This document shows, in pieces, positions 1,547 to 58,872 of a stretch of 64,000 nt of DNA. The DNA is taken from positions 186,001 to 250,000 of the forward strand of contig JBLDXI010000040.1 in assembly GCA_047495785.1 (NCBI GenBank), written 5' to 3'. How positions within the stretch are numbered: the stretch's first letter is position 1; the number at the start of each line of letters is the position of its first letter. Made by a program: the position numbers and the translations under genes. The notes under the pieces are model-generated. The model worked only from the letters and a program-made list of their open reading frames with translations. It did no database searches and was not told the DNA's origin. This DNA comes from Lepidodermella squamata (lineage: Eukaryota > Animalia > Gastrotricha).

Positions 1547-4664
<3,118 letters not shown>

Positions 4665-29444: not shown

Positions 29445-32400
29445 TCAAGCTTTGGCAACGTAGTCATACGCGCCTTTCACATTCTTGAGATCCGGAAATT
29501 TGTTGAACAAAAACTGAACAACCGCCGTTTTGCTGCCGTAAGACGCCAGGTGAACAGCCATATCACCAGCCTTGTCACGCTTCATCGCATCCGCGCGCTT
29601 CTCATCAATCAAATACTCAACAACAGCCACGTGACCAGCATAAGCCGCCGACATGACCGGCGTCCTTCCCAGCTCATCCACCGCTTCAACATCAACCAAA
29701 TGCCGGCCATCATCATCGGGCAGGGTGGTTAGCAATTTGACAACCTCCAAATGGCCGGATTGAGCCGCGTAATGCAGCGGCGTTTCGCCCTTGTCGTTCT
29801 TCGCGCCGGCTAGCGAGTGCTTTTCCGACGTCAGTAAGGTGGCTAAATATTGGACGATATCTAAACGACCAGCTTGAGCGGCGATGTGCATAGCGGTGTC
29901 GCCTTTCGCGCCGTCTTCAACCTCGAAATTTGCCGATTTTTCGGCGATTAAATACCGAACAATGGGCAAATGGCCGATGCGGCATGCGGCCATTAATGAG
30001 GTGCGATATGGGGATAATTCCGATCGGCTGTCAAGTAAATATCGGATTCGGGAGTCGTCGAGTTGAGGATTTTCGAGAATTTCTTTCACCTTAGCCAGAT
30101 TTTTGGCCGCAATTGCTTGACGCAAGGATTTCATAGTGGCTTTGAGTTCTAAAAAATTAAAAAATTAAAATTAAAATTAAAATAACGAAAGAATAAAAAG
30201 AAAATATTATTTTAAATTAATTAATTTAATTTAAATTTCTGATAAATTATAATTACAATTTTTTTCAATTTATTCAATTATTTTCAATATTTTCAATATT
30301 TTTGAATTAACCTGCTGGAGCGCTGATGCATTTGCTAGGCTGTGGTTGCCAAGTGTTGGGACCGGCACAAGTTAGCCCAGCTTCAGCTTCAACAACGAGT
30401 GGAATAATGCACTTCAGAACCAGCTTGGAACCAGTTTTGAGCCGGGTCGGATTCTTGACCTCCCTTTCTTTGCCGGGCGCGGAAATCGCGAAAAACGCAC
30501 CGTTAGCTACAACAGGCACTTCGCACTAAAATTTAAGTAAAAAAAAATAATAATTAATTCCATTAAGAATAAAATTTAGTAAGAAAGACGGGATATAGTG
30601 AAATCATTACCAAATTATTGAATTCAGTACCAAATTATTCCAAACAGTTCCAAATCCCCTATTTGAAGACCCAGTCTTTAACCCTAACCTAACCCTAACC
30701 TAACCCTAACCCTAACCCTAACCCTAACCAGTTAAAAACCGAATAAAATTGTTGGGTATTGAATTAAATGAAATTTGGTACCGGCGTAAGATTTTCCCTT
30801 GGGAAATTTAAATAAATTACCATGAATTTTGCGTGAATTTTAGCATGTCGTCAACTTTAGAACACAGCTAATTTTCATTTAACAAAAATTATTCGAAAAT
30901 GAATATTTTTTCCAAGTTGGATTCCTGAGTGTGAACTTTGGTTCCAATTAGGTTCCAATTTGGTGATTTTTTCAAAAATCTCAATACTCACCATTTCGAT
31001 TGGAGCTGTTCGAAAAAAATGGAAAAGGTATTTTTCAGGTAAAATGACAATTTGAGCAATATTACCAAGATGTTGCTGGAGAAAATTTGCCACGTCACCA
31101 TGTCCAGCTGACCTAGCTAGATCAACGGCCTGGTTGCCACCAGCATCAACCGCCTTCAAATTCGCCCCTCTCTTCACCAGGAATTTAATCACCGAAAGAT
31201 GGCCAGTCATCGCTGCAGCGATTAAAGCCGTCCTCGACGTGTCATCCTTCGCTTCGATATTCGCATCGTGTGCGTTAAGCAGCAATTGAACCACGCGCAA
31301 TTGACCTGATTCGGCTGCGCTAATTAGGGGCGTCGCGCCGTGTGACCCAGATTCTTCTAGCAACGCACTGTCACGAGATAGCAATATTTCTAACACGCCA
31401 TTATTGCCAAATTTAGCCGCGATGTGAATTGGAAGGTCATCGTCGCGATTTTTCACTCGAGTTTTGGCACCTTTAAAAAAATTGACATGGGAGAAAAATT
31501 TCGAAAAAAATGAAATTAATAATTAATAAAAAAGCCGCCTTAAAAATTTGATTTTGAATTTTTTCAGAATAATCTCACCTTTTGCTAATAGAAAGGCGAC
31601 GATGGCTTTCGAGGCATTTTGAGCCGCAAAATGTAACGGCGACCATTTCTCGCCATCAGTCGCGTCAACATCAGCCGAAAACTGCTTGACCAGCTCAACA
31701 GCACAGCTCAATTTATCGTTAATAATCGAATACATAAGCGGCGTTTTCCCCGACTCGTCATCCTTCGCTTCGATCATCTCGGGATTTCGCTGAGCGAGAT
31801 ATTTCAACAGTTCGATGTTTTCGCAATTTTTTGCCGCAACGTGCAACGCGTTTCGACCAAGCCGGTCTGTTGTAGTCGGGTCAAGGTAACGATCTTCGAC
31901 CAGGTATTTCAAAACGTCGAGTTTCCCGCTTTCAGCCGCTCGCATTGTTAGAGTTTCATCGTTTTGCTCGTGGTCTCGGCTGGTTTCGAGGTATTTAGCG
32001 AAATCTGGACTTAGCGACGGTCGGAAGATGTTCTTGACATCGCTCAATTCCCCAGCAGTAATCGCATTTCTCAATTCTGAAGCCTCATGAACGAGTTCTG
32101 AATTTACAAAGAAATTTAGAAATTGAAAGAAAATTGAAAATTAATCAGAGATTGACATTAAATTTAAAAAATTCAGAATTTGTAATTTCGAATTTTTATT
32201 TCAAATTCAATTTGAAATTTAAAAAATTCAAATTTAAAATTTTTTCAAATTCGAAAATGGTCATTTCAAATTATTTTTAAAATTTAAAATTTTATATGTT
32301 TCAATCCAAATGCTTCTTTACCTTCAGGAGCTTCTCCGCATTGACCAAGATCCGGAAACCATTTGCCTTCGGGTAAGCAAATTGACGAATTGGATCCGAA

Positions 32401-35400
32401 CAGTAAGTAACCATCGTTACAAATCACCCGAATTTTCTGGCCAACTCGTTGATTTTCGCCATCATTTTCCTCAGCGACAACGCGGCCGTTTCCAATCTGG
32501 GGTAGGACGCAAAAAACTCGGGTCGGTTTTGGTGTAGTAGCCGGGCTAGGTCTCGGCACACATCGGCCAAGTTCCTGAGGGTAATAACGGCCTTGTGCGA
32601 CGCACATGACTGCGCTGAAGCCTTGGACAATGTAGTCATCAGGGCATGAAAGGGACACTTCGCTTCCAACTTCGACGCTTAAGGTGAATTCGGGGAGAAT
32701 AGGGCTGAAATCACGGGAAAGTTGCCCGATTTCGACTTTGGGCAGTAAACAATAGGCTTTTTGTGTCGTAGGTGTGCTTCGAGTTGAAGTAGTCGTCACT
32801 AAAAAATTCGAAATTTAAAAAATTTATCCGAATTTCAAACAATGATTATTTAAATCAAAATTTCAAATTTGTGAAATTTTATTTTCAGTAATTTTTCAAA
32901 ATTTTGCTTACGAAATTGGCAAGTTGCCAAGCTTGGAAACCAGTCACCCGAATCCAGGCAGATACTGGACGTAGCACCGAAATTGAAATAACCCGGGTCA
33001 CATTTGATTCTAATCACGTGACCAGCCGGCAATGATTCATCTTCAATTGTCGCCGTCGTATCCTTCGGCTTTGTAATTTTGAACGATCCGTTTTCAATTG
33101 CCGGTTTCGAGCATGGGGTAGAAATAGTTGTCCTAGTCGTTGTTGCTACCACCTCGCACGTTCCTTTTGCCTTTGGGAACCAATCATTTTCGCCAACACA
33201 GCGGATTTCGGTCGCGCCTGTAGCGACGTAACCTTCGTCACAATTTAGCCACAATTCAGTGCCAAGAGGTAACTTCTCAGCCTAAATTTAAAAAAGTGAA
33301 ATATTAAATTGGATGTTAAACGGACAAAAGTCAGAAAATTCGCCCAATAAAATTTCACTTCTTCGATTTTCTAATTTTTTAATTTTTCAATTAGGAAAAA
33401 ATTGAAAAATTGAAAATAATTCAACTTGCCCCGTGATCTGAATATCCATCAAATTTGCCATGTTCGACCACTGGCGTGTCGCAATAAATCGTTTTCGAGT
33501 CCTCAGCAGTAACTTTATCAGCCACATGTGTGCTACGCAGGTCGCACTCTCCAGGTAGAGGGAAAAACGTGTTGTGATTTACACATTTGATGGTTCCATG
33601 TGTAATAGGCACCTCATAACCTTCGTTACACGTCAAGTGCAACTCGGTGCCAACACCAACCTTATTAACAACTCCGTCGGCCGCGTAGTAACCTGAGGAA
33701 AAAGTATAGAAAAATATAACATTTCAACAACAAAAATGAGCTTGGAGATAAATAAATGACATTCATTGAGAAGGAAAAAATCAGGTTTCGACGCGTTCGA
33801 CGCGCGCTAATGATGTCAAAGGGCAATTATCAAATAGTTTGTCGGTTTTCATCCCAAAATGAAGTTCAGAAAATTCACTATCGATTGAGTATAGGGATTG
33901 AATATTCTCGCGCGAAAAATTTAATAGGAAAAAATGGAAGCGCACTCGAAATTTGTGAGTCAATTAAGTGCGTTATTCCTTCGCGCGCTCGAAATTTAGC
34001 GTGTGTTCCCATTGATTTGTTCGCGCCAGAACCCTATATTCAATCGATAGAGAATTTTCTGAATTTTAATTTGGTATGAAAACCGCCAAAATATTCAAAA
34101 GTACCCCATTGACGTCAGCGCGCGCCGTCGAAAAATTCTTATGAATTCTTCGAACGCGCACACAAGTTTTAATTTTGCTAAATTTATTAGGTCAGGCAAT
34201 CTAGCGAAAAATCGGCTAATTTTAAGTTATTTTAAATAGTCTAATGAACTAATAAAAATTGTGAAAAATATTAACAGCTAATAAAATTGATGGCACTCGT
34301 GATTATTACCTGTACTTATTTTTGGGACGTCGCACTCTGCTGCCTCCGTCTCCAAATTCGCGCCAAAAGTTTCCTGATTAATTCGCACTGAAGGCGTAGA
34401 TCTCGGCACACAATTCGCCTCCGTAGTAGGCGGGAACCATTTATTGCTATCGGCACACATCACGTGATCAGCGCCCACTGCGTCATACCCGTCCGGGCAA
34501 TCCAGCCACATCTCGGTACCCAGCGGTAGCTTTTCCTCCGTAATTTCGAAATATTGCGCATCACGAAAGTGCCCAATTGACAAAGTTGGGACATTGCAAA
34601 ATTTCTCACCGCCAGAAATTCGGTCATTGGGTAGCACGATTTTAGCCGTCGTTTGCGGAACGGGTGTAGTCACTTTGGAAAAATTAATTAAAAATTAAAA
34701 ATTAAAAATTAAATTAAAATTTACCTTCAACACAATCAGCAGTTTTCGGGAACCAGTTGCCACCAGCTATGCAGATCGAGCTAGAACTCGGCCCGGATGG
34801 TTGGTAGCCTGGGTTGCAAGTCAGTTGAATTTTCCGACCCGGCAACACACTCATAGGATCGTCTTCACTTGACAAGTCATACCGCCCATTGTCCACAAGC
34901 GGCACCGAGCAATAGATAATGGTCGTCGTTTCGGTAGGAGTAGTAGCGGTTGTTGTTGTAGTAGTCGTGGTCTGCTCAGGTACGCATTGGCCGAGTTCGG
35001 GGTATAGCTGGTTGCGGCTTACGCACATGACCCGATTCGCACCAGTGAGCACGTAATTACCAGGGCAGGTCAGCGTGACCTCGGAGTATAATGAGACAGC
35101 TTCGAATGTCTCATGATTCGAGGGTTCGATCGAGAGCTTTCCAATGCTGATTGATGGCAGTTGGCAGCGAACTTCTTGCGTAGTCGATGGAGATTCGGTT
35201 GTAGTGGTAATGACTTGAAAAATAATTAAAAATTCAAATTACGAATTTTCAATTTTCAATTTTTTAAAAAGTTGCGATAAATTAAAGCAGAAAATTCAAA
35301 TTTTGAATTTTTAGCCCATAGGTCTCATTATTACGCGTAATTTGCGCTATCATCGGTCAGATTATGAGTCATACTTAAGTCTGCGAAGCCGATATCGATT

Positions 35401-37170
35401 CCTGTTATCGATTTTACAAATCAGTGATTTTTCCGATATCAGCAGTTAGGGAATCCTACATCGAACAATTTTCTTCATACCTTAAGTTATCAGGTTGCTA
35501 AAATGTAAAATGCATATCCTAGAGCTATAGGGTGAATTATTATTGTTTAAGGATCGAAAAATCGAAATCGAAGAAAATCGGAAAATCGGAAAATCGAAAT
35601 TTGATTTTTGAAAATATTCAGATAATTAGAAAAAATATGTTTACCCTCGCTGCAATTTCCAGGTTCTGGAAACCATTGCGAGTTCTCGCGGCAAATAATT
35701 CGTTTGCTGCCGATAATTTCGAAATTTTCCGACGAGCATTGAAGTACCAAAACGGTACCGACAGGCGACAAGTGACTCTCGCCCATAGCCTCCAGCAGAC
35801 GATCAGGATGGTCTTCTTCCGACCACCAGCCGCCAGCCACCGACGGCCATTTGCAAGAGACCGGTTGCAGGGTGGTTGTAGTCGGGATCGAGATACATCG
35901 GCCGGGTAGTGGGAACCAGCTGGCTGAAGGCTGATGAAGGCTGTAGCACAGCAACTCGGAACCGCCGAGTAATTTATAACCGGGTGAGCAGGTCAGGCGC
36001 AACTTGGTTCCGATTGGTACGAATTCCGGTTGGCTTTGAAGTTCATGATCACTATGGAGGTCGTAATCTAGTGAATCAGCATCATTGACGATTTCGAGTT
36101 TCCCATTAGCAACAACAGGATGAAGGCACTATATAAATAAATTGAAAATAAAAAAGTCTGAGATTTTACTCAAAATATTGAAAATTGATTGATCTTGCGA
36201 AAAATTGGAAAAAATTGAAAAAATGAATTTTTTTTTGAAAAATTAAAAATTTCAGGCAAATGTAATCAAGTAAGAATTAAAAAAAATTACATAAAATTGA
36301 AAAAAAATAAATTAATAACGAACCATAGGTGGAGCTAGAGTTGTAGTCGTAGCGTCTACGCATAGGCCGGGTTGTGGGAATAACACGCCATTGAAGCACA
36401 GGCTTTCGGTTAGATTCGTGCCCAAAGTTGTGTAGCCAGGATCGCAAATTAGCCGAATTTTCACACCATGATTGATTTCTAGAGTTTCATCACTGGTTGG
36501 AACTCCTACAATTTCGAAATGACCCTTCGCAACTGGCGGCAATAAACACTGAAAATTCAGGAAAAAATCAATGAGTTTAAAAATTAAATTAAATTTTGAA
36601 AAATGGGAAAAATTTAAAAATTGAATTTTTTTAAATTTCGAAAATTTACGTTGACAGATTTTTCGGCTTCGACTTTGATATTTTTAGCCGAAATAGGATC
36701 CGTGACTTCAGGCACAGCTTTTTCAGTCGTCGTAGCTTCAGTTATCGTAGTTGTAGTCGTAGTCTCAAGCTCAACGCATTGCCCGAGTGCCGGCGTGAAA
36801 TTGCCATTCACGCATTTCGATTCGCGTTTCCCGACCAATTCGAAGCCGAAAATACAAATCAGCCGAATTATTGAACCTTGCACAGCTTGACCTTCATTAT
36901 TACCGCCTTGCAACTCAATTTCGCCATTCTCAATGGCGGGCAAAAAACATGTTTTCGGCTATTAAATTGAAAAAAATTAAATTTCGAAAATTCACAATTT
37001 CGAAATCGAACCTCGATTTTTTCGGTAATTAAGGTGGTCGTGGAAATTTCTATTGTCGTAACTGGATGAGTTGCAGTCGTTGAAGTATCAGTGTCATCAT
37101 AGTTCAAGTCGAATTCGTCTGCTAACGAGGCGCCAAAAAACAACAAAGAATAAAGTAAAAAACGTATCAT
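29445..37170 (-). CDS. Secreted mosaic protein: signal peptide, about 12 CCP/Sushi modules with Thr-rich linkers, about 8 ankyrin repeats, 1 CCP, about 5 ankyrin repeats
   Basis: Signal MIRFLLYSLLFFGASLA. CCP pattern C-x2-P..NG..C..G[YF]..C....W.P....C. In-frame phase-1 joins GEAPE|ELVHEASELRNAI and ISAPA|ELKATMKSLRQAI link CCP exons to ankyrin exons (TPLHYAAQSGHLEVVKLL etc.). No TM segment seen. AATAAA about 40 nt after the stop. Confidence 0.82.
30679..30729 (-). repeat. Interstitial telomere-like (TTAGGG)n tract in an intron
   Basis: (CCCTAA)n with some CCTAA units on the + strand. Confidence 0.9.
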
Positions 37171-37365
37171 AATTATTGTGTTTATTAATCATGTAAAATT
37201 ATGAGGTGTGCCTATAATTTTGTTTCCAGAATTTCCAGATGAGTGCCAGATGTTGGGGCACGCGCGGGAAATTCAAACACGTGTTTCCACAGTCAAATTT
37301 TAATTTCTTAAATTTTTCGAAAAATTAAATTTGGATTTTAAACAGAATAAGAGCTAACAACGAAG

Positions 37366-38867
37366 ATGCTTTTTCTCAGTTTTTTATTGTTGATATTTTA
37401 TCATCTCGAAATTTCTATTGCAAGTAACTCAACCGTGACCGAATCTGCGAGAAATTCTACTTCTTCACCAATAAAATCTGTCTATGTTATCGGCATTGTT
37501 TCGATTCAACGTAACAGTTTATCCGAAAGCCAGCCATGCGGAACAGCGGGTCATCTATCGCTAATTGCCGATCAATCACCGCAAATTTTCGAGCAATTAC
37601 TCGCTAGATTGATGCCAGAAGCTGCCGAATCGATTCACAAGGCTCTCACAATCGATACGCGTGAGACTTATCTGTGCGGCGATTTAATCACGCGTGACGA
37701 AAAAAAGCCCACCTTAATAAAATTGCCGAATTTTGCGCTTCAATGCTTTGCGCGGCGTTTGTTCGGCGCCTGCTCACCGTTGGAAATTTTACGCCCGGAT
37801 TTAACTGTGAACACCCTGCCGGCCCGAGCTGCGACAAGTTGCACATCACGCCGTCACGCTTCGCCGATTTTTGAGACAATTGTCGAGTCGTTGCTAGGGC
37901 GTAGTGTGAGGATAGAGCGGAATTTCACGCTCAGTCACGCTGTTGAGCAGAAGGCGTGGCAGTTTCACGACGGCAAGTCAGCCAAGCATTTTCTTAGCCG
38001 AAAAACGGAAGCAAGTGCCGAGTACTTTGGCGAGGTGGATGATTTCGTCGATTTTCACGCATCAGGTCGATCGATTCAGGTAAAAATTTCAAAAATTTCA
38101 AAAAATTTCAAAAAATTTCAAAAAATTTCAAAAAATTTCAGAAAATGGCAGATAATTCGTAAATAATTTTTTTGAATCTCATTTGAATTTTCCGAAATTT
38201 TGAAATTTTTTAACCAATTATTTCCGAGTTTCCAATTGAAAATTTTGAAATTGAAATTGAAATTTGTATAAAATAATTTTTAATTTTTTGAAAGTATTTT
38301 TGTCGAGGCGTTGTGACTCCTTTGATTAAATCGACCCTTGCGCCAACATCGCCGGCTACAACAACAACCGCGGCTACTACAACCGAATTCGAGTTGGCAG
38401 CCGAAACCGCCCCGATCCAGGCCAGCCAACGGCCGCCTCGCCGTCGAAGGGCGAGTAATGCCGAGGTTCTATACGTTTTCGCGCTCTCTTTCTTCTCATG
38501 CTGCGCTACGGCAATTTTAAGCTGGAAAGTTGTTCAGAGATATCGCAATCGACGACATGTCCAGGCTTTGAGGTCAAGTCTCTCCCCGGCTGTTCCGAGG
38601 CGGAGAAATAACCCACCTGAACTAACCGGTTAGTTTGTCCTAAATGAGGCCATTTTTTATATATCAAATTTATTTATCATTCTAGTAACTGGAGCGACCT
38701 TTGACTCGCAGGCGATGACTTCAAGGTCCCAGGGTGCGACAACGGGTGATTTCACCTCGACACTGGGAGAAACAGCGGTGAATTCGAGTCGACCTCCGAG
38801 TTACGACGAGCTGATCCTGAATGCTTCTACCCTTCAAGCCTATTCAAAACAAGAGGCGCAAAATTGA
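37366..38867 (+). CDS. Type-I membrane protein: unrecognised 6-Cys ectodomain, Thr-rich stalk, TM helix, cytoplasmic PPxY (3 exons)
   Basis: Signal MLFLSFLLLIFYHLEISIA. Exons 37366-38079, 38295-38628 and about 38686-38867. TM VLYVFALSFFSCCATAILSW, then a basic stop-transfer stretch, then tail RPPSYDEL. Confidence 0.8.
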
Positions 38868-39173
38868 CAAAAAAATCCCGTTTCGAAATTTTTGTTTTAA
38901 TTTATGAAATTTACCAGCAAAATGTTATAAACACAATTTAAATTTTGATTTTTGTACGTTCAATAAAATGAAATTTTTTATAATAATTCAACTCGGTCAG
39001 CACTCGGCAATTTTTTTATTATACCTACTCTGAGAGTCACTCGAGGTTTTTCCAAGTTTTATCACGCATTGCCACCTTGGTTAATTTCACACACAAAAAA
39101 TCATAAAAAACGCTTAAATAATTTCTCGTCAGAATGAGGCGATGAAGAATTGCTGCGAATTCAAGGCGCCGGT

Positions 39174-41444
39174 ATGATCAATTTTATTGGATGGCTAGTT
39201 GTTGTTTTATTTTCATTTTGTGAATGCCAATCGTCGAATTTAACAACAAATTACGGCCCGCTCGTTGTAGGCGGGTCATTTGCTCAACGATTCGAATTTC
39301 CATGGATGGTATATAGAAAATTTCAAAAATTTCAAAAAATTTAAATTATGAAATTTAGGTTCGAATTTATAGCGATGTCCCAGGTGTTGACACATTTGTA
39401 TGCGGCGGTGCCCTAATTTCAGACAATTGGGTCATCACAGCCGGTCATTGCGTATCAACAGGTCGAGAGACAGCAATTAGGTACCTTGACCTCGATTTTA
39501 ATTAATTAATTTTAGTAAAATTTCAATAATTAGGTCAAGAGTTATCCTTGGGAAAACTGATCTTAGTACAACTGAGCGAGGCGAGACGATTAGATTAGTC
39601 TCGGATAGGGACATTCACGTGCATCCTTACTATCGGCCCGGTGCTAATACTGATTTCGATTTTGCCCTGCTACGCCTTAATTACCCGGTTTCGCTTTCGA
39701 TGGCGATAAAACCTATTGATCTGCCCGATAATTACTGCGATAATGACTATGACCTACTTTCGTCCACAATCGATTCGTGCTGGAAAGGGACGTCAGTCGG
39801 CTGGGGTAAGGCTTGAAAAAATAAAATTCCTCAATTTTCTCGAAATTTTTAAATCAAAATTTCAAATTTTCAAAATTTTCAATTTTTTTTAATTTTAATT
39901 TTTAAATAGGATTGACGGGCCCCTCCGATTACATGTCAATGAGGCTGAAAAAAATTTCGCTAAACATTGCGCCGTTTCTCCAGTGCGCGCTCACCTATCA
40001 GGGTGACTACTTCACGGATGCGAAAATATGCGCAACTGGCGGTCCGAACCAGCAAACTTGCCGTGGCGATTCTGGCGGACCTTTAACCTGTATAGGGTCA
40101 AATAACCAGCCTTACCTGTTGGCGCTCACTTCCTACGGCCATTTGGCTTGTAATGAAACTGGAGGCGAAAAGCCATCAGTTTATTCAAGTATGTTTTATT
40201 GTTTTTGGCGAAAAGCCAATACATTTTAAAAAATTTAAAATTCAACCAATTATTAAAATTTTAAAATTTAAAATTTAATTTTTGAAATTTAAAATTTCAA
40301 TAATTTGAACACTGAATTTTTAAATTTTGAATATTTTTGAAATTTGAAATTTAATTTCATATTTTTTTAAGGAATTTGTCGAGTTATTCCGTGGATTCGC
40401 CAATATTTAGGACCATTGGTAAAAAGTACCCCCCGGCCGACAATTCGGGCTCAAAATTCGCCTCAAACAACTTCAACCCGAGCCACAACAGTTCGAAGCA
40501 ATTTAATACCAATTTCAACAATTAAATTCATTGATACAACACCGAGACCGATTCCAACTCGAACAATTGATGACAATGCTTATCCACCTGTTATTTACCC
40601 GAATTACCCGCCTATGTTATCAGCATCGAATCCCGCTCGATTCTTGTTCCCACCAGCTGTTCGAGACTGTTCCGACCCTAGTTACCTCATTACCCTAACT
40701 CGACTAGGCACCCTACAGGCAATATGTCCCTTGAACCAGGTCAATCCTTACGTCATTAAATCGGCATTTTTCAACGCGATTCGAGCTGATTTGATCGAAG
40801 TTGTCGCCTCATTTCTCGACTCAAGCTACGTCTCGGTGAATGAAGAAGAGCTGTACCCTGACTACGGCTATAAACAATCCGCCTTAATATTAGCCGCACG
40901 ATGGGGTCGGCTCGCAATTGCGCAGCTATTACTGGCTCGGGGTGCGGATTTGAATGCGAGAGATTCGTTGTACAATCGAACGGCTGTTATATGGGCGGCG
41001 TGTGAAGATCGCGAGGCGATGGTACAGGTTTTGCTGGGCCGAGGCGCGTCGCTGATTGGCTGCAGGTGTAGTGCGCGCAATAATGCGTTGTGCGCGCCTG
41101 AAAGTGGGACACAGCAATTGAATGACCTAATTGTTGTTCCGCGATTTAATAACGCGATTTTCAACGCGATTTCAGCGACTAATTATGGCTTGGATTCTTC
41201 AGAAGAACAACTGGATTATGAATTTTCGTCCGAAATTCCCGAAACTACCACGCAAAATAATGAAGTTTCAAGTGGCTATCGGAGATTTTATACGACATCG
41301 ACTAGAAAATTGGCGACAAATCAGCAGCGATCTGTGGACATATTGGCACCGAAAATTCCGATTTTAGCGAGTTGTTCTGGGAAAATGGAAATTAATACTA
41401 GCATCATGTTTTTAATTATATTTTGGAGAATAAATGAAATCTAA
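39174..41444 (+). CDS. S1 (chymotrypsin-fold) serine protease + mucin stalk + Cys-flanked ankyrin repeats + hydrophobic C-terminus, paralogue 1 (5 exons)
   Basis: Signal MINFIGWLVVVLFSFCEC. Activation site GPL|VVGG. Triad TAGHC / DFALL / GDSGGP. Splice YS-RICRVIPWIR runs in frame into ORF 40416-41444, which has SALILAARWGRLAIAQLLLARGADLNARD. Confidence 0.88.
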
Positions 41445-42749: not shown

Positions 42750-43190
42750 AGATTAATTGATGAATTAATTGCTTGATTGATTGATTAGTTAGCGTCTTTG
42801 AGTAGGTTGGCTATTTGAGTAAAGATGATTATTCAGGATCCTAATGCTATCCTTAAGGATTTGATGGGCCATATCAACAGCTGTACTTCTGCTGATTCCG
42901 TAATCTTGAAGTAATTGGATCGCTTCTTTGGTTAGCGAGCCCCGTGTGCCGATATAAAGGCCGTGTACTTCTATCGAGTCCAAATCAAAGGCTTCGCAGA
43001 TGAACTTGCTACACGGCTCGTAGATCGAACGCTTCTCAATGTCGACATCTCCGAATTGACCTTCTGATGATTCAAATCTAATTGTGGGGTCGATGATTGC
43101 TCCATGTCTGCTTCCTCTTCGAATTCGCTTCGATTCGCCTATTTGGACCGCTCGGATATCTGCTACGGTTATCGCAGGGCAGCACTTCAA
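42750..43190 (-). mobile_element. 3' fragment of an R2/NeSL/Utopia-type non-LTR retrotransposon (restriction-like endonuclease domain)
   Basis: ADI..AIIDPTIRFE..EKRSIYEP..GLYIGTRG..ILNNHLY* followed by a (TCAA)n-like tail. Confidence 0.75.
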
Positions 43191-44303: not shown

Positions 44304-44727
44304 ATGATCTGCAAGCTAACGATAGCAGCATGCCTGGTGAGTTTCTGCAATTGACGAGCGTATCATATAACTAATGGCAATGATAAATTTGTTTTGAAAC
44401 TAGGTAGCAGCGGTTCTTTCGAATCCGCTCGGGGGGACCATGAGGCGTGAGGCTCAGCGCCGTGAAGCTGGTTACGAAGAGGCTCAGCGCCGTGAAGCTG
44501 GTTACGAAGAGGCTCAGCGCCGTGAAGCAGGTTACGAAGAGGCTCAGCGCCGTGAAGCAGGTTACGAAGAGGCTCAGCGCCGTGAAGCTGGTTACGAAGA
44601 GGCTCAGCGCCGTGAAGCAGGTTACGAAGAGGCTCAGCGCCGTGAAGCAGGTTACGAAGAGGCCCAGCGCCGCGAAGCTGGCTACGAAGAGGCTCAGCGC
44701 CGTGAAGCTGGCTATCAGGAAGCTTAA
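44304..44727 (+). CDS. Secreted repeat-peptide precursor (118 aa): signal peptide, RR-EAQ, (RR-EAGYEEAQ)x8, RR-EAGYQEA
   Basis: Exon 1 44304-44336 (MICKLTIAACL|gtgagt) joins exon 2 at 44404 (aactag|VAAVLSNPLGGTMRR...) in frame with ORF 44440-44727. The 30-bp repeat units differ only at synonymous positions in this frame, except the last unit. Confidence 0.85.
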
Positions 44728-46094
44728 ATAATTTTAAGCGATTGCAACTGCGATTGTCATATTCCACTACAAGGGAAGAGACTTGTATAGGATTTCGCCC
44801 GGTTTAATTTATTCGTTGCACCCTAATTGCTCGCATAAATCATAATGCTCTAATGATGGCAGGAAAAAATCATACTTTTCTCCTTGCAATCATGGAAACA
44901 ATCGCTTCTTTAGGTCATCACTATCGCCTTACCTTGTGAATAAACAATTCAGTTAAAGGATGACGTTTCGCTCTCGTACTAATTTTGATGAGGTGTATTT
45001 GGGTGTATATGTTGCAGTGTTTGGGATTTTATTGAGATTTGATTTAAAATTGTTTGATTTGATTTTTGCGCAAAGATTTGATTCAGCTTTTCAAAAATTT
45101 CGCCAATGATTTTGTTGTCCTCGAGTCTCAATTTAACACTGAAAACGATTCGACCATCCCTATTTTTCTATGTAAAAATGGTGACCGATATTCATTTGAA
45201 GCCAAGAATTTCGCCGGTTTTCAACTCAATACAGTTGTCAATGCAAAATTGTCGCCTCATTTTCCAAAAACAATGTTGTTCAGCTTTTCGAGGTGGACAT
45301 ATTTAAGGGTAAATTCTTTCAAGATTTTAAAAGATTCGCCATGGTGTCATGGGCAGTTTATGGATGCCTGTGCTCAATGGCGCATACCTGTGGACTACTC
45401 GTATCTGATCTCAGCCATTTAGCTAGGATATGCCGTATACCCAGAACTGGAACTTGGAAAATTAATTCCAATCAATCCAAACAATCGGCCAGCTTTCGAT
45501 GAAATCGAAGAGAGCTCAGGCAGCATTGAATCCCAGAAATCGCAACAGGGCATCGATTGCGACATTGAAAGCAGGAAGATACAGAACAACGATACAGATG
45601 TTTCGAGCGATTCCTGACACCATGGCAAATAGCAGCCTTTCGTTCAAGAACGGATTTCGTCAATCCAGTTTTTCGTCGACTTTGAAAGCGCTCTGCTAAC
45701 TGAGGTGTTGAAGGGTCTTTTGACAGTTTGACAGCCATGCGAAGCCACCCGAGCAGAACCATCTTGCGTCCTACAGCCCAATTTTGCGATTCAGTAGCAG
45801 CAATTTGTTGAGCATGCGAGAAATGCGGGAAATTCGATGTGAAAAACAAACCAAAAACTCGCTAAGTGAAGAATGCGAGAACCATAGAGAATAGAGTTAC
45901 CTATTCTCTATCTATGATCTCCAGAAATTTTTACGAATGACGAGACAACATTTTATTGGACAAATTAATGAAAAATTCAGGTAGGACAGACATTTCATTT
46001 GCCAAAAATATGATTAAGCTGCTTCCGATAATAGTTCATGGTCGATCTCAGAGGGATGTCGAGAAATTATTTTCGAACTTTTTTTTTAATATTT

Positions 46095-47835
46095 TCATAA
46101 TTTAGTAGGCTCCGCGCCAGTTTCTGCCTTGATAAGAGCCGAAACGGGTAGAATTCCAGCCTCTAAGCAATCAGCCAGCGACAAATAGCCAACAGTTTCA
46201 GCCTGTTCGTTGATAACAAACGCGCCTCGTAGGCCGTGAGCCGACATTTTGACCACCGCATCCATAACATGTTCAGTTTCAAACAGTACACAATAGCCTA
46301 GGGTCAAGGCGCTACTACGGCCGAGCGAATTCGCTTGAATGAGCGCTTCATCCACGGTTAGATCGAGGCAATTCGATTTAGCGAGTAGGCGAATGTCGGC
46401 GTCGGTTATTGCGTCGATCAATTGACCCTGGTCGTTAATTACCCCGACGAGGCCAGCGTGGCTGTACAATAATTTCGGCATGGCTTCGGTTAATTTGCAT
46501 GACTGAAGGACTGTACATGGCAACCGAAGAGGATCCTGGAAAAAATCGAGAAATTCGTTAATATTTTCGATTAAAAAATTAACAAAATCGGTTATCGATC
46601 CAAAATTTATGAATTTCGATTTTTTATAGTTTGAAAATTAAATTTGAAATTTTGAAAAATTTAAACTTACAGTTGACATGATATCTTTAACGGGTCGGTG
46701 GCGCCACTTCGTGCGTTGAATGTGGTAGTCACGACTCGCCACGCCTCGCCTCGCTCGTTGGGTGCACACAGCGAGGGCGTCACCCAGGGCGGCCATGCAC
46801 TGGCTTGACGTAGTCGGAAAATTCGATAGCAAATGAGCCTCGGGTAAATCCGGAATTTCGAGCTAAAAATTCGAATAACGATTCAGCATAAAAACATTTT
46901 AATTATTAAATTTCAATTTTGATCTTTTAAAAATGCAATTTTTCAAAAAAAATCAATTTCACCGATTTTGACATTTTCAAAAAAAATCAGAAAATTTCAA
47001 AATTATTTTTAAAATTATTAAACTGAGTGAGTAAGTTTGAAACTTCAATAATTTAATATCATCATTTTTTAAATTTCTTGAACTTTCAAAATTCAAAATT
47101 TTCAACCAGTTGAAATTTTTTCAATTTTTCAAATTTTTGAGCTTACACAAATTTGCGCAAAATCGCCTAATTGGCTGCCTTTTTTAGCCGTAACAGCAAT
47201 TATCGCAACACCTAGCCGTTGAGCCCGTAAAAGCGCCGGTATCAATTCGGGGACTTCGCCACTCTGCGACAGCACAATAAAAGCGTCGCCCTGATTAATC
47301 GAGTCCAACTCGCCGTGGTAGCCTAGGTCGTCCGGGTGTAGGAAGAAGGCCGGCGAGCCTGTTTGAGCGAGAGCGGCGGCCAATTTTCGCTCGACATGGC
47401 CACCTTTCGACAAGCCGCTGACAATAATTCGACCTCGTAGGGTGAGTAAAACTTCACAGGCTTTGGCGAAGGAAGCGCCTAACAAAATTAAAAATTAAAA
47501 TTAAGGAGGACTTTTTAAATTGAAATTAAAATATATTAAGGTGGATTTTATTATGACCCAATTTTTTAGTAACCTATCATTGAGTTGGCCAAATGTCGCA
47601 AAGCTGCCGCTTCATCGTTGATAATGCGCCTCGCTTCACTGATTGCCGTGACGTGGTCAAGCGTGACGAGTCGCAAGGTTGGTTTCGGCGGTTTATTTGA
47701 CCTCGAAGCGGATGAAGAAGCGACCGATGATGAGTCATCAATGTATCTCAACCGATTGAGGCGTGAATTCAGCTGAAGCCAGTCAACCGAATCGAACAAC
47801 TGGCTAGCGATTTGATGCGGAAATTTATTCGCCAT
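46095..47835 (-). CDS. KdsD/GutQ/KpsF-family sugar-phosphate isomerase-like protein (SIS + CBS pair), 4 exons, divergent
   Basis: ARRIINDEAAALRHL..FAKACEVLL..GRIIVSGLSKGGHVERKLAA..TGSPAFFLHP..HGEL..LSQSGE..EAH..PTTSSQ..GDALAV..VKDIM..ITDADIR. Three GT-AG introns join in frame. Confidence 0.88.
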
Positions 47836-48357
47836 AATAACTACAATGAGCCGCGCGGAAAATATGATGCGCGTCCTCCGCCTAAGACTTTTGTTTATAA
47901 CGATGGTTTTTCGTGTTGTCAAGTGAAGAGGCTATCGCGACTTATATCAGGACAATAGGTGGTAAACATGGGTCATTAGTTGTATATGGCGATAAACACT
48001 CGCGCGTTCTCATTGACAAATATGATTGAGTAGCTGAGCGCGGATATTAGGTATCGCGTTACACCCCATAGGATTTGCACTTATTCCACCTTAAATAATA
48101 GAAAAATCGGGAGACTGTTGCAATCAAAGACGCGGGGCTGAAAATTGGGCACAAAACAGGTCAAAAACTCATCATTGGTTCAACAACGCCGCCTTAAAAT
48201 AAATGAGCTATAAAAATATTACCAATAATTATGGAAAATGCATAATAGCCGCACTCTAACGCAATAACCCGCATTTTGACACTTGCGCGCGCATAATATA
48301 ATATATTGCGCGCAATAATTTCAGCGCCTAATAAAATTTAGTGTGAAAATTGAATTG

Positions 48358-50923: not shown

Positions 50924-52390
50924 ATGAAATTATTCCCAAGTCTCTTTGCTACTTTTTTGAGTTCATGTTACATTTTACCATCCGATGCAGATTTGGTAAG
51001 TTTTCTCGAGAGTTTCGAAAATTTATCGATAAATTGATTCGGTTTGCTTTAAGACGCGGCTTGAAGCTTTGGCAGTTGTCCCAGACAGACTAACCGATGA
51101 TGAAATTACTACCCTCGATAATTTGTACGATCGTCAGAAACTTTACCAATTCACGAAGCCTATGCTGATAGTCAGACATCTCAATTCTGAGGGCCATGAA
51201 GCAGTCAAAACTGTAATTTTTTTAAATTTTCTTAAATTTTCCTCGATATAAAAAAAATCAATTTAACCTGAGAATTTTTGAATTTTGTTCGATAAGAATT
51301 TTGTAATTTTTAGGATTTTTTTCTATGTCTTACAAATTTTTCTGAATTTTTTGAAGTTCAGGTTATTTTTTTTCAAGATTTTTCAAAATTCTAAGGATTT
51401 TCTGAAATATTTATGTACCTTTCCAGTATCTGGCTAATTTTTTCAAAGAGCGCCGATATGTGACTGAGGAGCACGTTTTCCAGGACCAAATGCCGAACGG
51501 GACTGAATTCACCGGGGCGAATATAATCGCAACCAATCGGCCTTACTCGCCTACAACTCGCCGTTTAATCTTATCCTGCCATTGGGACTCAAAATATCTA
51601 GCCGGTCTGCCTTTCATCGGCGCCATAGACGCCGCGCTACCGTGCGGAATGCTATTACTGATCGCCGATGTGTTGAGGCCGGTTTTTGCGAGACCGGTGA
51701 ATCAGCAGTTGCTTCGAAGGGCTAATGTGGCGCTGCAATTCGTATTTTTCGATGCCGAGGAGGCGATCGAATCGTGGACGGAAACTGATTCGATCTATGG
51801 AGCTCGAAAATTAGCGGTTAAATGGACTCGGTAAATTTAAAAAAATTTGAATTTTTTCTGATTTTTTTTAATTTTTTGTTAGCGAGAACCAAATTTCTGG
51901 CATTGACCTGTTGGTGCTGTTAGATCTGCTCGGTGCAACTGGTATTGACCTACTTTCACACTTTTCGCAATTGACCTAAATTTAATTATTTTCCATTTTT
52001 ATTGCCGCAGATTCGCAGCTCTCGTCCTATTTTAGCGAAACACTGCCATTCTTCGAAGCTCTAGGCGACGCTGAATCTCGACTCCGCGGCAAATGGGCAA
52101 ACTTCAATGACTCATCAGCAAATGCCCTCGCACCAGTTTTCAGCCCCGCGTTGAGTAGTTCGACGTATATTAAGGCGGATCATTTGCCGTTTTTGCGGCG
52201 CAGCGTGCCTATTTTGCACATGATTCCTTATCCGTTTCCGAAAGTTTGGCACACCATCAACGATAATGAGGCTAATCTCGATTGGGACCAATCCGACCGG
52301 TTGACCCGGGTTTTACTGATTTTCACCGTTCGACAGTTGAACGCAATGATCGCAGCTAATGGAATAACAAATAGCACACTTGTTTTGTAA
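50924..52390 (+). CDS. QPCT: Secreted glutaminyl-peptide cyclotransferase-like protein (M28 fold), 5 exons
   Basis: Signal MKLFPSLFATFLSSCYIL. Motifs LSCHWDSK, GAIDAALPCGML, FFDAEEA, DSIYGARKLA, VLLDLLGA, DHLPFL and PFPKVWHT. Confidence 0.9.
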
Positions 52391-52598
52391 AATAAAAAAT
52401 CTACCTTAAAATTTCTGAATTTTTTTATTTTTAAATAAACCACCGGTTAATTTTTTCAAGCGCGTTTAAACGAAATTTATACAATGTTGTAACAATCATC
52501 GGATTGATTGACTGCATCGCCGGGCGAAAAGTACAGCTATTTACAATTTATCACAAAGCACAAGCCATTAAATAAAAAGAAAATTCCTCAAAAATAAA

Positions 52599-55500
52599 TC
52601 ACCGTTGTCTGGATACAATTAAAAATGTTGATAAATTTAGGAATGTGAATAAAATTAATCGAGGCGAGTTTTGGCGATTCGCTCCGTTTGATATAATCAC
52701 CTTCTGACCGGAACGGTTTGAAGTCGAAGAGCCGCCATTCGGCTGGTCGGCATACCAAAATTGCACCTGGTCAGTTGAGTTTCCACTTGGAGCTGTAAAA
52801 TAAATATTTTAAAAATTCATAAAATTTGAATTATTAATTAAATTGATCAATAAAAAAACATAAATTGTTAAACTTTTTAAATTTAAATTAATTATTAATT
52901 TTTGAAAATTCTGTCGATTAATTTTTAAATTTTCAAAATTTTCAAATTTCAATTTTCAATTTTCAAAAAAAATGCGGGTCTCACCTGTATCATATCGGTA
53001 CGTCCTGCCAACTGCCCTGGCCTGGCTGCCACCAGACTGGCCCGAATCTTGAACCAACGGCATGGCTTGCCACAAAGTCGAACACGGCTCATCCGTACAT
53101 TTACAATCTTTCGCATTAACCGACCCACCCCGCTGCAGTAAAATCGAAACAACCCGCGGTTTTCGCTCACAAATCGCCCAATTTATCGCCGTCCGCTTGT
53201 AGTAGCTATCCTTGGCGTGAATATTAGCCTTCCGGTCTAATAAAACCCCGACAACAGCCGGCCTGTCCCAACGAGCTGCGACAATGAGGGCAGGTTGGGT
53301 GTAGCCGTAATCCGGGTAGGACTCCTCAGAATTCACGTCGAGTTTACCATCATCAATTAACAGCCTAACAACACTCGATAAATCAGCCCGAATCGCGTTG
53401 AATAACGCTGATTTGCCAACATTTCTATTCAAGGTCGCGAGAGGGCATGACGTCATTTGACCTGTTAGCAGCTTTAAAATGACGTAATCTGGGTCAGAGC
53501 AATTAGCGGTTGGGTCGTTCGGCGGCGTGAATAGCGAGCTATTTGATGTTTTATTAGGCGACTGGTCGTAAATTTGAGCGATTATTTCGCTGTCGATGAA
53601 AGGCAATTGCGTGGTGTATGACGCTGGTGGCCGCGCCGATGATCGCGCCCATGAACCAGTTTTATTAGCCCATTCGTCCATAACGGATCGAATCCAAGGT
53701 AAACCAGCGCAAATTCTTAATTAAAGAAAAAAATCAGTGAACGGCTGTTTTATTTTTTCCATAAAAATCAGGAATATTTTAATCAATTTTTTAAATTCAT
53801 GAATAAATTAGTAAAAATCGTAAAATTATGAAAACATGGAATTTGAATTTTTGGAAATTTTTCAAAATTTTCAAAATTTTATTGAACAAAATGAAAATTC
53901 TAATTTAATTTCAACTCTCTCAATTTCAAATTTTAATTCAATTTTTTTGAATTTCGAGATTTTTGAAGATTCATTGAATTTTTTCTCAATTTCAAAATAT
54001 CAATACTTCACCTGGAATAAACAGCCGGCTTGGTTCCCGTTGTGTCATTGCAGTTAATATTGCCATAAGACGTGATTCCAATGATGAAAGGCTTCGTTTT
54101 GCTATAACAAGCCAGTGGGCCCCCAGAGTCACCCCGGCACGTCTGCTCACCCGCCCTGCCTCGGGCGCACATCTTCGCCTGGCTGAAGTAGTCTTTAACG
54201 AAGGTCCGGCTGCAGATTGAAAACGGGATGAAGCTGAGTGTGACTTTTTTAAGGTTGTACGACATGTAATCGGCGGGCCCTGGGCGGCCCCATCCGGTTG
54301 CGATGGCCTCGGAGCAGCCGTCGATTTCATCGTCGTAGTCGGAGTAGGAACCATCCGGCATACAGCTATCGGGACCGGGCAGGTCGACGGGGGAAATCGT
54401 TCGAGATCGACGAACAGGCGATTTTAAACGGATTCTAAATTAAATTAAAATTTCAAAAAATTCAAAAGTAAATTCAAAATTCTCTACAATTTTAGAAAAA
54501 ATCAGAAATTTTAAAATAAATTTGAATTAAATAAATTAGCTGAAAATAAGACAATTCTCAAATTTCAAAATTCCAATTTTTCAATACGAAATTTAAAATT
54601 TCAATTTTTAAGAAAACTAACAAAGCAAAATCGTGATCGGTATTGGCGCCAGCGTAAAAATCTGGGTGAACGTAAATATCGGCCGATGACGCTGCTCGGT
54701 ACTCTTCACCCGCCTCGCCGGGTACGGATAGGTCGTGTTTGCCCAGGTAGGCGCGCACGCTGTCCGCCTTGTTTCTTCCGGTTGAGACGCAATGAGCGGC
54801 TGTAATAATCCACTGCTCGTCGATAAGCGTGGCGCCGCATGAAAATGTGTCCGTATTAGGAATATCGGTATAAAGTCGAACCTGGATTTTTTTTATAAAA
54901 TTGAACAAAAAACAACTGCATAAAAAACTGCAATAAAAACAGCAATAAAAAATAAACAGGATTTCCGGTATGAAAAAAATACAAAATTCAGGCCTGTAAA
55001 CTTGCGGCTGAACCATTGGGGTTTCGGGCTTTTTGGTAAATTACCATAAGACGTGATCCAACTGATAAATGGCTTCCCTTTACTACAACAAAGTTCCCAA
55101 CTAAATGATAAATTCAGGTAAAAATAAGCGGCGAGGTTTGAAATTCATGAGGCCTTTGAATATGCAAATGAGCGAATCTCTGATTTATTAAATTTATATT
55201 GTAAAAAATCCGGTAAATTCGGGAAAATTAAAAAAAATCAGAGAAAAGCGGAAATTTTTAATTGTCTTTTGTTGAATTTTTGAGCAAATTTTCAGCCTTG
55301 AATCTTCAAACAAATCATCAATATTGGATTTATATTTTAAAATATTCAGAACTTTGAAATTTCAAGGCTTCCAAAAAATTCAGAAAAATTCAGAAAATTA
55401 TTTTAAAATGTTCTAAAAATTGGAAATTTGATTTTAAGATGCTTACCATCCACGGAAATTCGTGTTTTTGAGCAAAAGATCCGCCGAATACAAGCCAGCC

Positions 55501-55614
55501 AACATTAGGATCGTCGACAGTTCGCCGGTCGCGCTCTAAATTCGCCGCTATTCCCAGTGAAAAATTATTCATAATAAAAATAGCGACCAGCGCGAAACTT
55601 CGAAGGTGCTCCAT
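52599..55614 (-). CDS. S1 serine protease + Cys-flanked ankyrin repeats + GPI-like tail, paralogue 2 (5 coding exons)
   Basis: Signal MEHLRSFALVAIFIMNNFSLGIA. Activation site GWL|VFGG. Triad TAAHC / DFALL / GDSGGP. YS-RICAGLPWIR splices into the ankyrin exon. Last exon 52792-52599 ends SNGANRQNSPRLILFTFLNLSTFLIVSRQR*. Confidence 0.88.
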
Positions 55615-57567
55615 TCTTTGAAAGCCCTAAATAAAAATTCAAAAATTAATTAAAAAAAATCCAATTTTTTAAAACTATTCAAGTTACGAAATTCAAAACA
55701 ATTAGATTTTCAATGGGCAGGTGCAAATTATTTAGGCATTAGGAGGGACTTGACATGCGGTTAGCTTAATCGTGAAAATCCCTTGATAAATTAGTAGATC
55801 TTACATTACAGCTAAATATCACGCTTTTACGCGCATTTTTGTTATTTTAATGGCCACAAAAATGGTCATGACTATTTTTTTGCCCATCTACGCACGCCTC
55901 TTTTTTGCATTTCCAAGCATCAATTTTATACCTGTATAACAGCTCATCAAGCTTTGCTCTCGTGTCGGCACGTGTGATTCCTTATTACACCTCCATCTAA
56001 ATAATGATGGTGGAAAAAATTTGTGGGTAATAATAATATTGTGATAAGTTTCAATCTTTATTACTTCAAGAAAAAGCGTTTTAATTCTAATAGCCCTCAC
56101 ACGACTTCGCGAATTTTAATTGCCTGCGTAATAAGGAGGTGGTCATTTTTTCTGCATTTTTTGTCAAGAGATCTTAACATATGCGTTCATATACCTGTAA
56201 TTTCGTGGTCAGCGGGCAGGAAACCCCTTCACCGGCACGAGAATCTTGTTTTTCTCCCACGAGTTTTTTTTCGTTTTTTTTTACAACACTTCTTTATGCC
56301 TGCGGTCATCAAAAAACGGCCAGATTGCGGTTGTAACAACGTGTAAAATCTTGTTTTATGATAAATGGAAAGCAGGATGAAAAAGTTGAACGCTGAGGAC
56401 AATAATTTTTTCTGCTGACTGGATACTCGTATGCGTTTTTTGAACGTATTTTTCATTCGTACTTGAACGGATTTCCGGTCATATTCCGGTCATAGTCGAT
56501 TTATTTTCAGTAATATTCTGATTTAAACCTGAGTAAGGATCATAGCTCATCTAGAAAGCTGAGATAACTTCTTATGATAAAATTTGCAGGTAAAACACAT
56601 GAAATTAGGCTTGGAAAGCTCAGGAAACCTGAAAGGTCCCGAACCCTAGATCGAACTTAATGAAAATAGGGAAAGACCCCACTGAAAATCAACGGCCAAC
56701 TGTTATTAAAAGGGACGGCTTTTGATGCAAAAAATAACATGAAATTGATAAAGCTGAATATGGAATGGCGACCTAGAATGTAACTTTGCCTGTTAGCGGA
56801 ACCAAATTTTGGAATTTTCTAGAGGCCTGGAGTCACTTTTCGGATATTTCTTGGGTGTCAAGATTGACAATAGTAATTCTGAAAAAATCACTATTAAATT
56901 CAGCGTACCATTCTCTTAAAGACTGAGCTTTCAATTCAGAACTCATGCTTCGCCTGAATTTATAGAATTATTCAAAAAGTGACACTTGGCATATTTCGAG
57001 TAAGGTTCCGCTAAAAGATATTCTGGTTTTAGTACCCTCACTACATCGAATTTTTTACTCAACTACGACTATAATAATCGTTTTTTGCTCTGGCATCAAA
57101 TTTGCTTAAAATATGGCTTTTGACGTTCATTATGACCCACGCCACGGTTTTACGACTTCTCAACAGCGTCAATTGCGCAGTGACACTTGAGCAGTGAACT
57201 GGAACTTCAATTTTATTCAGAATCGTGCAGAAATTTAATAGAATCTAATTCAAAGCATTTATATTGAATCAACAAAAAAATCAAATTTTGAATGATTTTT
57301 AACCTTTCTATATTAGTCCTGATTATTCGGTCCGGCAACAATTGGCTGTCAAATGAAAACAAACACAACAAGCAGACAACACACGCTTGACTGCACACGT
57401 TTCAAACGCGTGCGCTGTAAATCGCACTTTTCCGCGCCCTAATTCGCGCTATAAAACCCACGCAAAATCCACCTTAAAATGCAGTTATTATCATTACAAC
57501 ACATCTTACTACATACACACATTTTTGTTCAGTTTTATCTGCGGTTAAGAGCGGTTAACAATACATC

Positions 57568-58872
57568 ATGATGCTGTTCAATTTTTCTTGCTTTTTTCTT
57601 CTAATGGCTGGTGTAATGTCCCAAGAGCAAGCTATCGACAGTGCGATTCGCGAGGCGTCGCGCCGCCGTGCGCCCATCCAACTCGTCGGCTCGATTTCAG
57701 TCGCGGCCAACTCGATCTCGCAGGCATCGCCGTGCGGCGCCGACGCCAAGCTATCAATCGCTCTCGGCTCGTCGATCGAACTGTTCGAAACCACGGCCAA
57801 GGCTATCATCGGCTCATTCGGCGATATCGCCATCGAATTTCGCGATAAGCATCTGTGCGCCGATCGCAGTTGCGCGAGTGGCAATGAAGTTTTTGCTGAA
57901 TTGACGCGGCTGAACATGAAGTGTCATAAGCGCAAGTACTTTGGCGGATGTTCGCCGTTGGATTTGCTCGAGCGTGACCTGCCCAAGGCGAATGCGACCG
58001 ACTGTTCGACTCATCGCACTTACGTGCCGGCTGAACACTTCATGAAGCTCAAGGACGAGATTTTCTCGCCCGTCGAGGCCTATGAACCAACGCCCATTGC
58101 GTTCAATGTAACTGAGGCTATCGAAGAGAAGACCTTCATGTTCCAGGTAAAGTTTCATGAATGCTTCATTTCAAAAATGTATTTGAAAAATTTACGAAAT
58201 TTGAATCTGAATCTTTGAATATTGAATTTGAAAGCTGAAATTTTTTATTTCAAACATTTTCTTATCTTCTTAAAATTCTCTCTATTAGGGCTGAATTTAG
58301 GGAAAATCCGCGAATTTTTATAAAATAATAAATTTTAAATTTCAAAATTGTTCAATATTTAAAAAAATTCGAAATTAAATTTTCAATTTTTTTCAATTTT
58401 TTTCGTACTTCGGAATTATTATTCCTTTCATATTTCGAAATTGAATTTTTTTTTAAATTTCCAGGAATAATAAAAAAAAGGGTATAAGGCAGTTTGCTTT
58501 TTTCAAAATTTCAAAATTTAAATTATTCTATTTTTTCATACTTGGAAATGATTATGCCTCTGATATTCCAAAATTCAAATTGTTTGAATTTTTCAAATTT
58601 TCAAATTTTCCAAGTAAATAAATTCGATTATTTGATTGATTGTGTGCCAATTTGACCTATTTTTTTTATTGTCCACCTTATTATAGGACGGTGCGTATTC
58701 GAAATTCTTTGTCCGCAAGTTCGGCAAGGATCGCCAGGTCAACTTTTTCGGCCGTCTCGTCGACGATCTGATCGCGTACGAGAAGAACAACCGCTTCGTT
58801 GTCTACATGTGCCAGGGCGTCATCTACCCGCGATTCGACGGCGAACAGGGCTTCCGCATGCTGCCCAACTGA
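57568..58872 (+). CDS. Soluble secreted protein made of the same unrecognised 6-Cys domain as 37366-38867 (2 exons)
   Basis: Signal MMLFNFSCFFLLMAGVMS. Exon 1 to 58146 (FQ|gtaaag). Exon 2 58687-58872 reads DGAYSKFF..FFG..DD..YMCQGVIYP..LPN*. TATAAAA near 57450. Confidence 0.85.

Follow-up and report, generated by a model that had tools for sequence, protein, structure and literature searches.

Ankyrin repeats are a textbook intracellular module. Latrotoxins are pore-forming toxins with no classical signal peptide and no Sushi or protease domains, and the serine proteases prostasin/PRSS8 and testisin/PRSS21, held by a glycosylphosphatidylinositol (GPI) anchor, consist of a signal peptide, one S1A domain and a short C-terminal hydrophobic signal. 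Here, we describe a locus in 64,000 nucleotides (64 kb; the window) of Lepidodermella squamata contig JBLDXI010000040.1 (positions 186,001 to 250,000, forward strand), where two genes, PA1 and PA2, join a trypsin domain to an ankyrin module, each next to a gene for a domain with six conserved cysteines (six-Cys). With moderate confidence, we read PA1 and PA2 as extracellular, probably GPI-anchored S1A proteases with a C-terminal three-repeat ankyrin domain stapled by three disulfides, kept beside the gene of an orphan six-Cys ectodomain. A natural, conserved ankyrin domain outside animal cells, predicted to be disulfide bonded, joined to a protease that looks active and encoded next to a receptor-like orphan gene, would extend the extracellular recognition modules (leucine-rich repeats, immunoglobulin domains, Sushi domains, lectins) by a repeat scaffold and would be the natural counterpart of engineered ankyrin repeat proteins (DARPins). 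The protease-ankyrin and six-Cys proteins form a defined pair whose interaction is directly testable.

Full-text literature searches returned no animal protein described with secreted ankyrin repeats, latrotoxins excepted, and no paper describing Sushi arrays together with ankyrin blocks; a survey of trypsin domain architectures (PMC6767649) mentions ankyrin 0 times.

Results and discussion

The window is intron-rich animal DNA (~40% GC) whose ankyrin-, Sushi- and trypsin-coding sequence all lies inside five genes named in a first-pass annotation, and Pfam searches of individual exons confirmed the Sushi, Ank and Trypsin families where that annotation had placed them. Spliced models were built for all five, each with a signal peptide and 0 internal stops; introns are GT-AG throughout, bar one GC-AG.

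PA1 (39174-41444, + strand; exons 39174-39308, 39359-39480, 39534-39805, 39910-40188 and 40372-41444; 626 aa) and PA2 (55614-52599, − strand; exons 55614-55447, 54881-54622, 54434-54012, 53715-52985 and 52792-52599; 591 aa) have five exons apiece and only GT-AG introns. Their products are 46% identical, and Trypsin and Ank were both matched by Pfam on the exons of each. In both genes, a single exon that opens just after a conserved VYS motif codes unbroken for the last trypsin helix, which bears a PW[IL]R motif, then for a linker rich in Ser, Thr and Pro, and finally for the ankyrin module with the C-terminal region behind it; in PA1, this last exon carries a hydrophobic tail after the module. 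Because helix, linker and module share one exon, the fusion is independent of splice prediction.

A second organism holds an intronless orthologue. Related contigs in European Nucleotide Archive (ENA) metagenome assemblies were reached with a profile of the two six-Cys proteins, which matched 3 proteins among 1.84 billion cluster representatives. Contig L001 contains a 563-aa intronless open reading frame (ORF; P0077) with a signal peptide, trypsin domain, linker, ankyrin module and hydrophobic tail, 47% identical to PA2 and 44% to PA1. A homologue search with the last exon of PA1 gave matches that cover just 8-40% of the query, in the ankyrin region, none of them with a trypsin domain. Among matches to the 563-aa query from 5.8 billion proteins (the 8000 candidates with most shared words were scored), Trypsin and Ank were combined only in cluster P0077, the remaining matches being ordinary proteases at ~45% query coverage; this upholds the suggestion that the architecture is lineage specific. 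That the ankyrin exons are separate cytosolic genes misjoined to Sushi or trypsin exons is very improbable overall, and for the proteases one shared exon, together with an orthologue that lacks introns, rules it out. On sequence grounds, the trypsin-ankyrin fusion is real and the protein is built for the endoplasmic reticulum (ER)/secretory route.

An N-terminal signal peptide is present in PA1, PA2 and the orthologue, and hydropathy gives no transmembrane (TM) segment between the trypsin and ankyrin domains of PA1 and PA2. The first-pass annotation had proposed this topology, ankyrin repeats after a signal peptide with no TM between, and the one-exon fusion and intronless orthologue bear it out; there is good support for secretory or extracellular repeats in the proteases, and the same placement is likely in the Sushi-ankyrin gene described below (CCP-ANK). 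Each mature protein of the three has 16 Cys, 10 fitting the canonical trypsin pairs (42-58, 128-232, 136-201, 168-182 and 191-220) and 6 in the ankyrin module, an even count consistent with a fully oxidised extracellular protein. All three close with ~10-15 hydrophobic residues, a stretch too short to span a membrane and typical of a GPI signal. Retention in the secretory pathway (granules, lysosome-like organelles or ER), with cargo processed there, is quite improbable: a signal peptide and disulfides would prove ER entry and not final destination, but the GPI-like tails, mucin-type linkers and Sushi context favour the cell surface or matrix.

PA1, PA2 and the orthologue are 51-56% identical across the trypsin domain and 45-50% across the ankyrin module; the figure falls to 19-32% for the linker and 9-21% for the tail. 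The module is thus conserved nearly as well as the trypsin domain and far better than linker or tail, which argues that it is under constraint.

The catalytic domain looks active. PF00089 (Trypsin) scored 148.1 bits on P0077 (cutoff, 20.6) and 23-64 bits on exon pieces of PA1 and PA2. His57, Asp102, Ser195 and the GDSGGP motif are kept in PA1, PA2 and the L001 protein; both window genes, already assigned S1 protease parts on first reading, have an intact catalytic triad. The closest solved chains are those of factor XIa (FXIa) and plasma kallikrein (E 3.5e-33). The N-termini VVGG, VFGG and LVGG align with IVGG of FXIa, whose residue 16 (Ile16) corresponds to the residue after a conserved Leu. 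This Leu, and not Arg or Lys, precedes the predicted activation cut in PA1, PA2 and the orthologue, and a G-[WP]-L motif is conserved at the activation site; zymogen activation would involve cleavage C-terminal to this Leu. Residue 189, at the base of the S1 pocket, is Gln in all three proteins, which suggests that specificity is not trypsin-like. The propeptides of PA1 and PA2 measure 12-17 residues. A Pfam scan of P0077 returned the Trypsin and Ank families alone, with no CUB, Sushi or CLIP (PF12032). The N-terminal CUB-EGF-CUB-CCP-CCP region of MASP/C1r/C1s is accordingly missing from the P0077 scan and from the short PA1/PA2 propeptide, and the arthropod CLIP-protease plan, an N-terminal CLIP with activation after Arg/Lys, was not found, there being no PF12032 match and a Leu at P1. 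These features lend no support to the immune or clotting cascade suggested on first reading.

The ankyrin module comprises three repeats plus caps in PA1 (40665-41069, +), as delimited by alignment, six invariant Cys and an AlphaFold2 model of the orthologous module; its counterpart in PA2 (53097-53531, −) was placed by alignment and the same six Cys. Ank_2 matched the protease-ankyrin modules at 47-58 bits (cutoff, 27.3; P0077, 57.6). In the three-module alignment, the C-cap accounts for three of the invariant Cys, the N-cap for two and repeat 3 for one, and there are family-specific motifs such as YPDYGY. The three predicted disulfides would adapt the module to the secretory pathway. AlphaFold2 modelled the orthologous module at a mean predicted local distance difference test score (pLDDT) of 87.8 and a predicted template modelling score (pTM) of 0.84 (five models, 84-88), as an N-cap helix, three helix pairs with hairpin and a C-terminal helix; Foldseek paired this model with DARPins at probability 1.0 (rmsd, 1.7 Å over ~99 residues).

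The six-Cys gene has two forms in the window. The membrane form (37366-38867, +; exons 37366-38079, 38295-38628 and 38686-38867; 409 aa) consists of a signal peptide, a six-Cys domain of ~220 aa, a Thr-rich stalk, a basic juxtamembrane cluster, a TM segment (residues 296-313) and a tail with a PPSY motif. The soluble form (57568-58872, +; exons 57568-58146 and 58687-58872; 254 aa) has a signal peptide and neither stalk nor TM. They are homologous (tblastn E 2e-16) and have six conserved Cys in common, five invariant in the first-exon alignment and the sixth in a short conserved motif of the next exon; the domain has no Pfam match, and the earlier description of a membrane/soluble pair of one unrecognised six-Cys domain stands. 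A feature search of the Atlas with the domain scored 0.66, and a likeness to subtilisin inhibitors was dismissed as weak (probability ≤0.13).

P0073, from the second organism, is the orthologue of the membrane form (32% identity), with equal layout and a markedly conserved TM; P0072 and P0075 are orthologue-like to the soluble form. The tail motif PPSY[D/E]EL is kept in the membrane form and in P0073 and, in our reading, could serve as both a PPxY and a YxxL signal. A basic cluster (RRRR or KRR) precedes the TM at 38430-38560 and within P0073 residues 290-325, and 12 of 21 TM residues are identical, against 32% over the whole protein; cluster and conserved TM may mark a shedding site or a TM-mediated contact.

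Each protease-ankyrin gene adjoins a six-Cys gene, as the first-pass annotation had it. The membrane form and PA1 stand in tandem with a 306-nt gap, and PA2 and the soluble form stand head-to-head with 1953 nt from start codon to start codon. On L001, a 408-aa six-Cys membrane form lies head-to-head with P0077, 612 nt apart; the near-identical contig L004 has the same arrangement, as does L003, which adds these three contigs to the two cases of adjacency in the window. The protease/six-Cys pairing is conserved in two organisms. The other genes on these contigs (short-chain dehydrogenase, amidase, guanylate cyclase and carbonic anhydrase) have no counterpart in the 64-kb window, which leaves the pair as the only shared neighbourhood. 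A third organism, on contig L005 (JGI), has a soluble six-Cys gene with one 47-nt intron; two JGI metagenome scans, one querying the ankyrin module and one the six-Cys domain, turned up no relatives. On contig L002 of the second organism, near its soluble six-Cys gene, a small ORF (11534-11788, −) encodes one Sushi-like domain and a hydrophobic C-terminal tail.

If PA1 and PA2 are surface proteases, the ankyrin module would be a protein-binding exosite, as DARPin-like domains are. Its likeliest partner or target would be the six-Cys protein, with its receptor-like type I membrane form and its soluble form, which could be a substrate, receptor or regulator of the protease. A different use would be as exported effectors or venom-like factors aimed at a host, prey or symbiont, the ankyrin module acting on or inside foreign cells in the manner of latrotoxins or bacterial Ank effectors. 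Latrotoxins are indeed the only animal extracellular ankyrin proteins that surfaced in the literature searches; the GPI-like tails, however, would tether PA1, PA2 and P0077 to the cell that makes them, and one form of the six-Cys partner is a receptor-like membrane protein whose cytoplasmic motif is conserved; we regard this use as unlikely.

Several observations weigh against surface proteases paired with a six-Cys partner. Gene adjacency may be inherited, not selected. The second organism's soluble six-Cys genes lie between a guanylate cyclase gene and a gene for a small TM protein, with no protease-ankyrin neighbour. On L003 (3943-5631, −), the protease ORF is cut short by a stop at codon 413, immediately ahead of YPDYGY, whereas the protease-ankyrin ORFs of L001 and L004 are intact; the stop would be a null allele or a sequencing error, and the ankyrin module may be dispensable in some genotypes. 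GPI anchoring of PA1, PA2 and the orthologue is a prediction from the shape of their tails. The AlphaFold2 model of the six-Cys domain (7 sequences) has low confidence (pLDDT 61.7, with four of the five models scoring under 41) and gives no structural support for binding; with this weak model, fold searches (Foldseek against AFDB clusters and PDB, VIA-align wide and ESM Atlas) found no match (TM <0.36, Z <3).

The second of these points would fit protease-ankyrin and six-Cys genes that are neighbours by descent only, from one duplicated ancestral pair, with no joint work and a module that binds something else, as would the differing orientation of the two window pairs. We consider descent alone a doubtful account, if the strongest of the alternatives: the pair is the sole shared neighbourhood though the orthologues are just 32-56% identical and wholly different in intron content, and the head-to-head spacing on L001 is 612 nt.

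The third gene with ankyrin repeats, CCP-ANK (37170-29445, −; 14 exons; 1664 aa in a spliced model without a stop), encodes a signal peptide and 12 Sushi domains (their linkers rich in Thr), followed by ankyrin block 1, a 14-nt micro-exon (reading through it is likewise in frame), Sushi 13 and ankyrin block 2. The ankyrin blocks occupy ~310 residues after Sushi 12 and ~230 after Sushi 13. Block 1 (31066-32097, −; exons 32097-31579 and 31470-31066; residues 1047-1359) matched Ank_2 at 73-80 bits and block 2, the last exon (29445-30148, −), at 195.6 bits; the Sushi 13 exon (30312-30525, −) lies between them. PF00084 (Sushi) exceeded its cutoff of 20.7 bits on four scanned exon pieces, at 28-50 bits, and 52 of the 55 Cys are accounted for as 13 × 4 Sushi Cys. 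No 19-residue window exceeds 1.67 on the Kyte-Doolittle scale, which means no TM. A GC-AG intron (33428-33429, −; donor GCAAGT) splits Sushi 9, and the intron between block 1 and Sushi 13 contains a run of TTAGGG-type telomeric repeats (30679-30729, minus strand; GGTTAG units, some imperfect).

Both Sushi-to-ankyrin junctions are phase matched; from Sushi 12 to block 1, a phase-1 donor and a phase-1 acceptor enclose a 224-nt intron that is 17% GC and contains no hydrophobic ORF. The Sushi 13 exon starts precisely at an AG acceptor; an in-frame TAG lies a short way before it, and the preceding 540 nt contain no ATG or signal-peptide exon. Having no start of its own, it is an internal exon joined to block 1, and its position between the blocks puts at least block 1 in the same compartment as Sushi 13. 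In favour of misjoined cytosolic ankyrin exons, block 2 starts near an in-frame ATG (ORF 29445-30134) and could in principle be read alone; the similarity between blocks 1 and 2, however, extends upstream of that ATG to the first base after the block 2 acceptor, and block 1 has no in-frame ATG ahead of its first repeats. A hidden TM exon between Sushi and ankyrin was ruled out, the introns being 9-30% GC and their hydrophobic readings just T-rich tracts that run into stops and are not in frame with the following exon.

The model, its hydropathy and its phase-matched junctions therefore support the topology proposed on first reading for CCP-ANK as well. A homologue search with block 2 at E 1e-25, too strict to inform on Sushi-ankyrin relatives, returned one bacterial ankyrin protein, and no Sushi-ankyrin gene was found on the related organism's contigs, or beside the pair there. 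CCP-ANK appears from its sequence to be a secreted mosaic protein that has only the principle of extracellular ankyrin repeats in common with the protease-ankyrins, and it may or may not belong to one system with the protease/six-Cys pairs. A broader proposal would be that, in this lineage, the ankyrin repeat has become an all-purpose extracellular binding scaffold, disulfide-stapled and DARPin-like, exon-shuffled with Sushi arrays, mucin stalks, GPI anchors and proteases, to yield a diversified surface recognition system with protease effector arms and the six-Cys pair as dedicated partner of the protease branch; we hold this to be speculative and rather unlikely.

Other features of the window

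A cluster of five genes had been proposed. The two protease/six-Cys pairs exist, but they are ~11 kb apart with unrelated genes between them; the start codons of CCP-ANK and the six-Cys membrane gene are 195 nt apart. The intervening genes include one with SIS and CBS domain exons (46095-47922, −), an intron-split sugar-phosphate isomerase of KdsD/GutQ type, and a glutaminyl-cyclase-like gene (51069-52390, +) with Peptidase_M28 matches on two exons, which ends ~200 nt from the 3' end of PA2. At 44363-44767, a 30-nt tandem repeat leaves several frames open on both strands (EAGYEEAQRR-like units) and is probably a minisatellite, not a gene. ORFs at 18725-19525 (−) and 42789-43190 (−) resemble C-terminal parts of retroelement proteins, with a Pfam match for neither. 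An ATP-sulfurylase-like exon (2129-3699, −), whose look-alike clusters in the Atlas carry PF01747 (ATP-sulfurylase) and PF14306 (PUA_2) (score, 0.87), may belong to a 3'-phosphoadenosine-5'-phosphosulfate (PAPS) synthase gene.

Comparison with known systems

With the latrotoxins (spider venom; ~20 ankyrin repeats), the proteins described here would have in common animal ankyrin repeats that act outside the producing cell. CCP-ANK resembles multi-Sushi CCP/SCR proteins in its 13 four-Cys Sushi modules behind a signal peptide and differs from them in the two ankyrin blocks that follow Sushi 12 and Sushi 13.

PA1 and PA2 are like the proteases of complement, coagulation and CLIP cascades (C1r/C1s/MASP, factor XI/plasma kallikrein) in having a secreted chymotrypsin fold, the triad, canonical disulfides and non-catalytic binding modules. 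In the cascade proteases, however, those modules are CUB, EGF, Sushi, apple or CLIP domains at the N-terminus, whereas the module of PA1 and PA2 is ankyrin and lies C-terminal to the protease; the zymogens of complement and arthropod cascades are cut after Arg/Lys, whereas the predicted cut in PA1 and PA2 follows Leu and residue 189 of S1 is Gln. Prostasin and testisin are matched in the signal peptide, the single S1A domain and the short hydrophobic C-terminal end; in them no module separates protease from anchor, whereas a linker and an ankyrin domain come between the protease and the putative anchor of PA1 and PA2.

DARPins show that a domain of this kind can serve as an extracellular binder, and the predicted fold of the module superposes on three-repeat DARPins at 1.7 Å. 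Unlike them, the PA module is natural, has six invariant Cys in its caps and repeat 3 and is fused to a protease.

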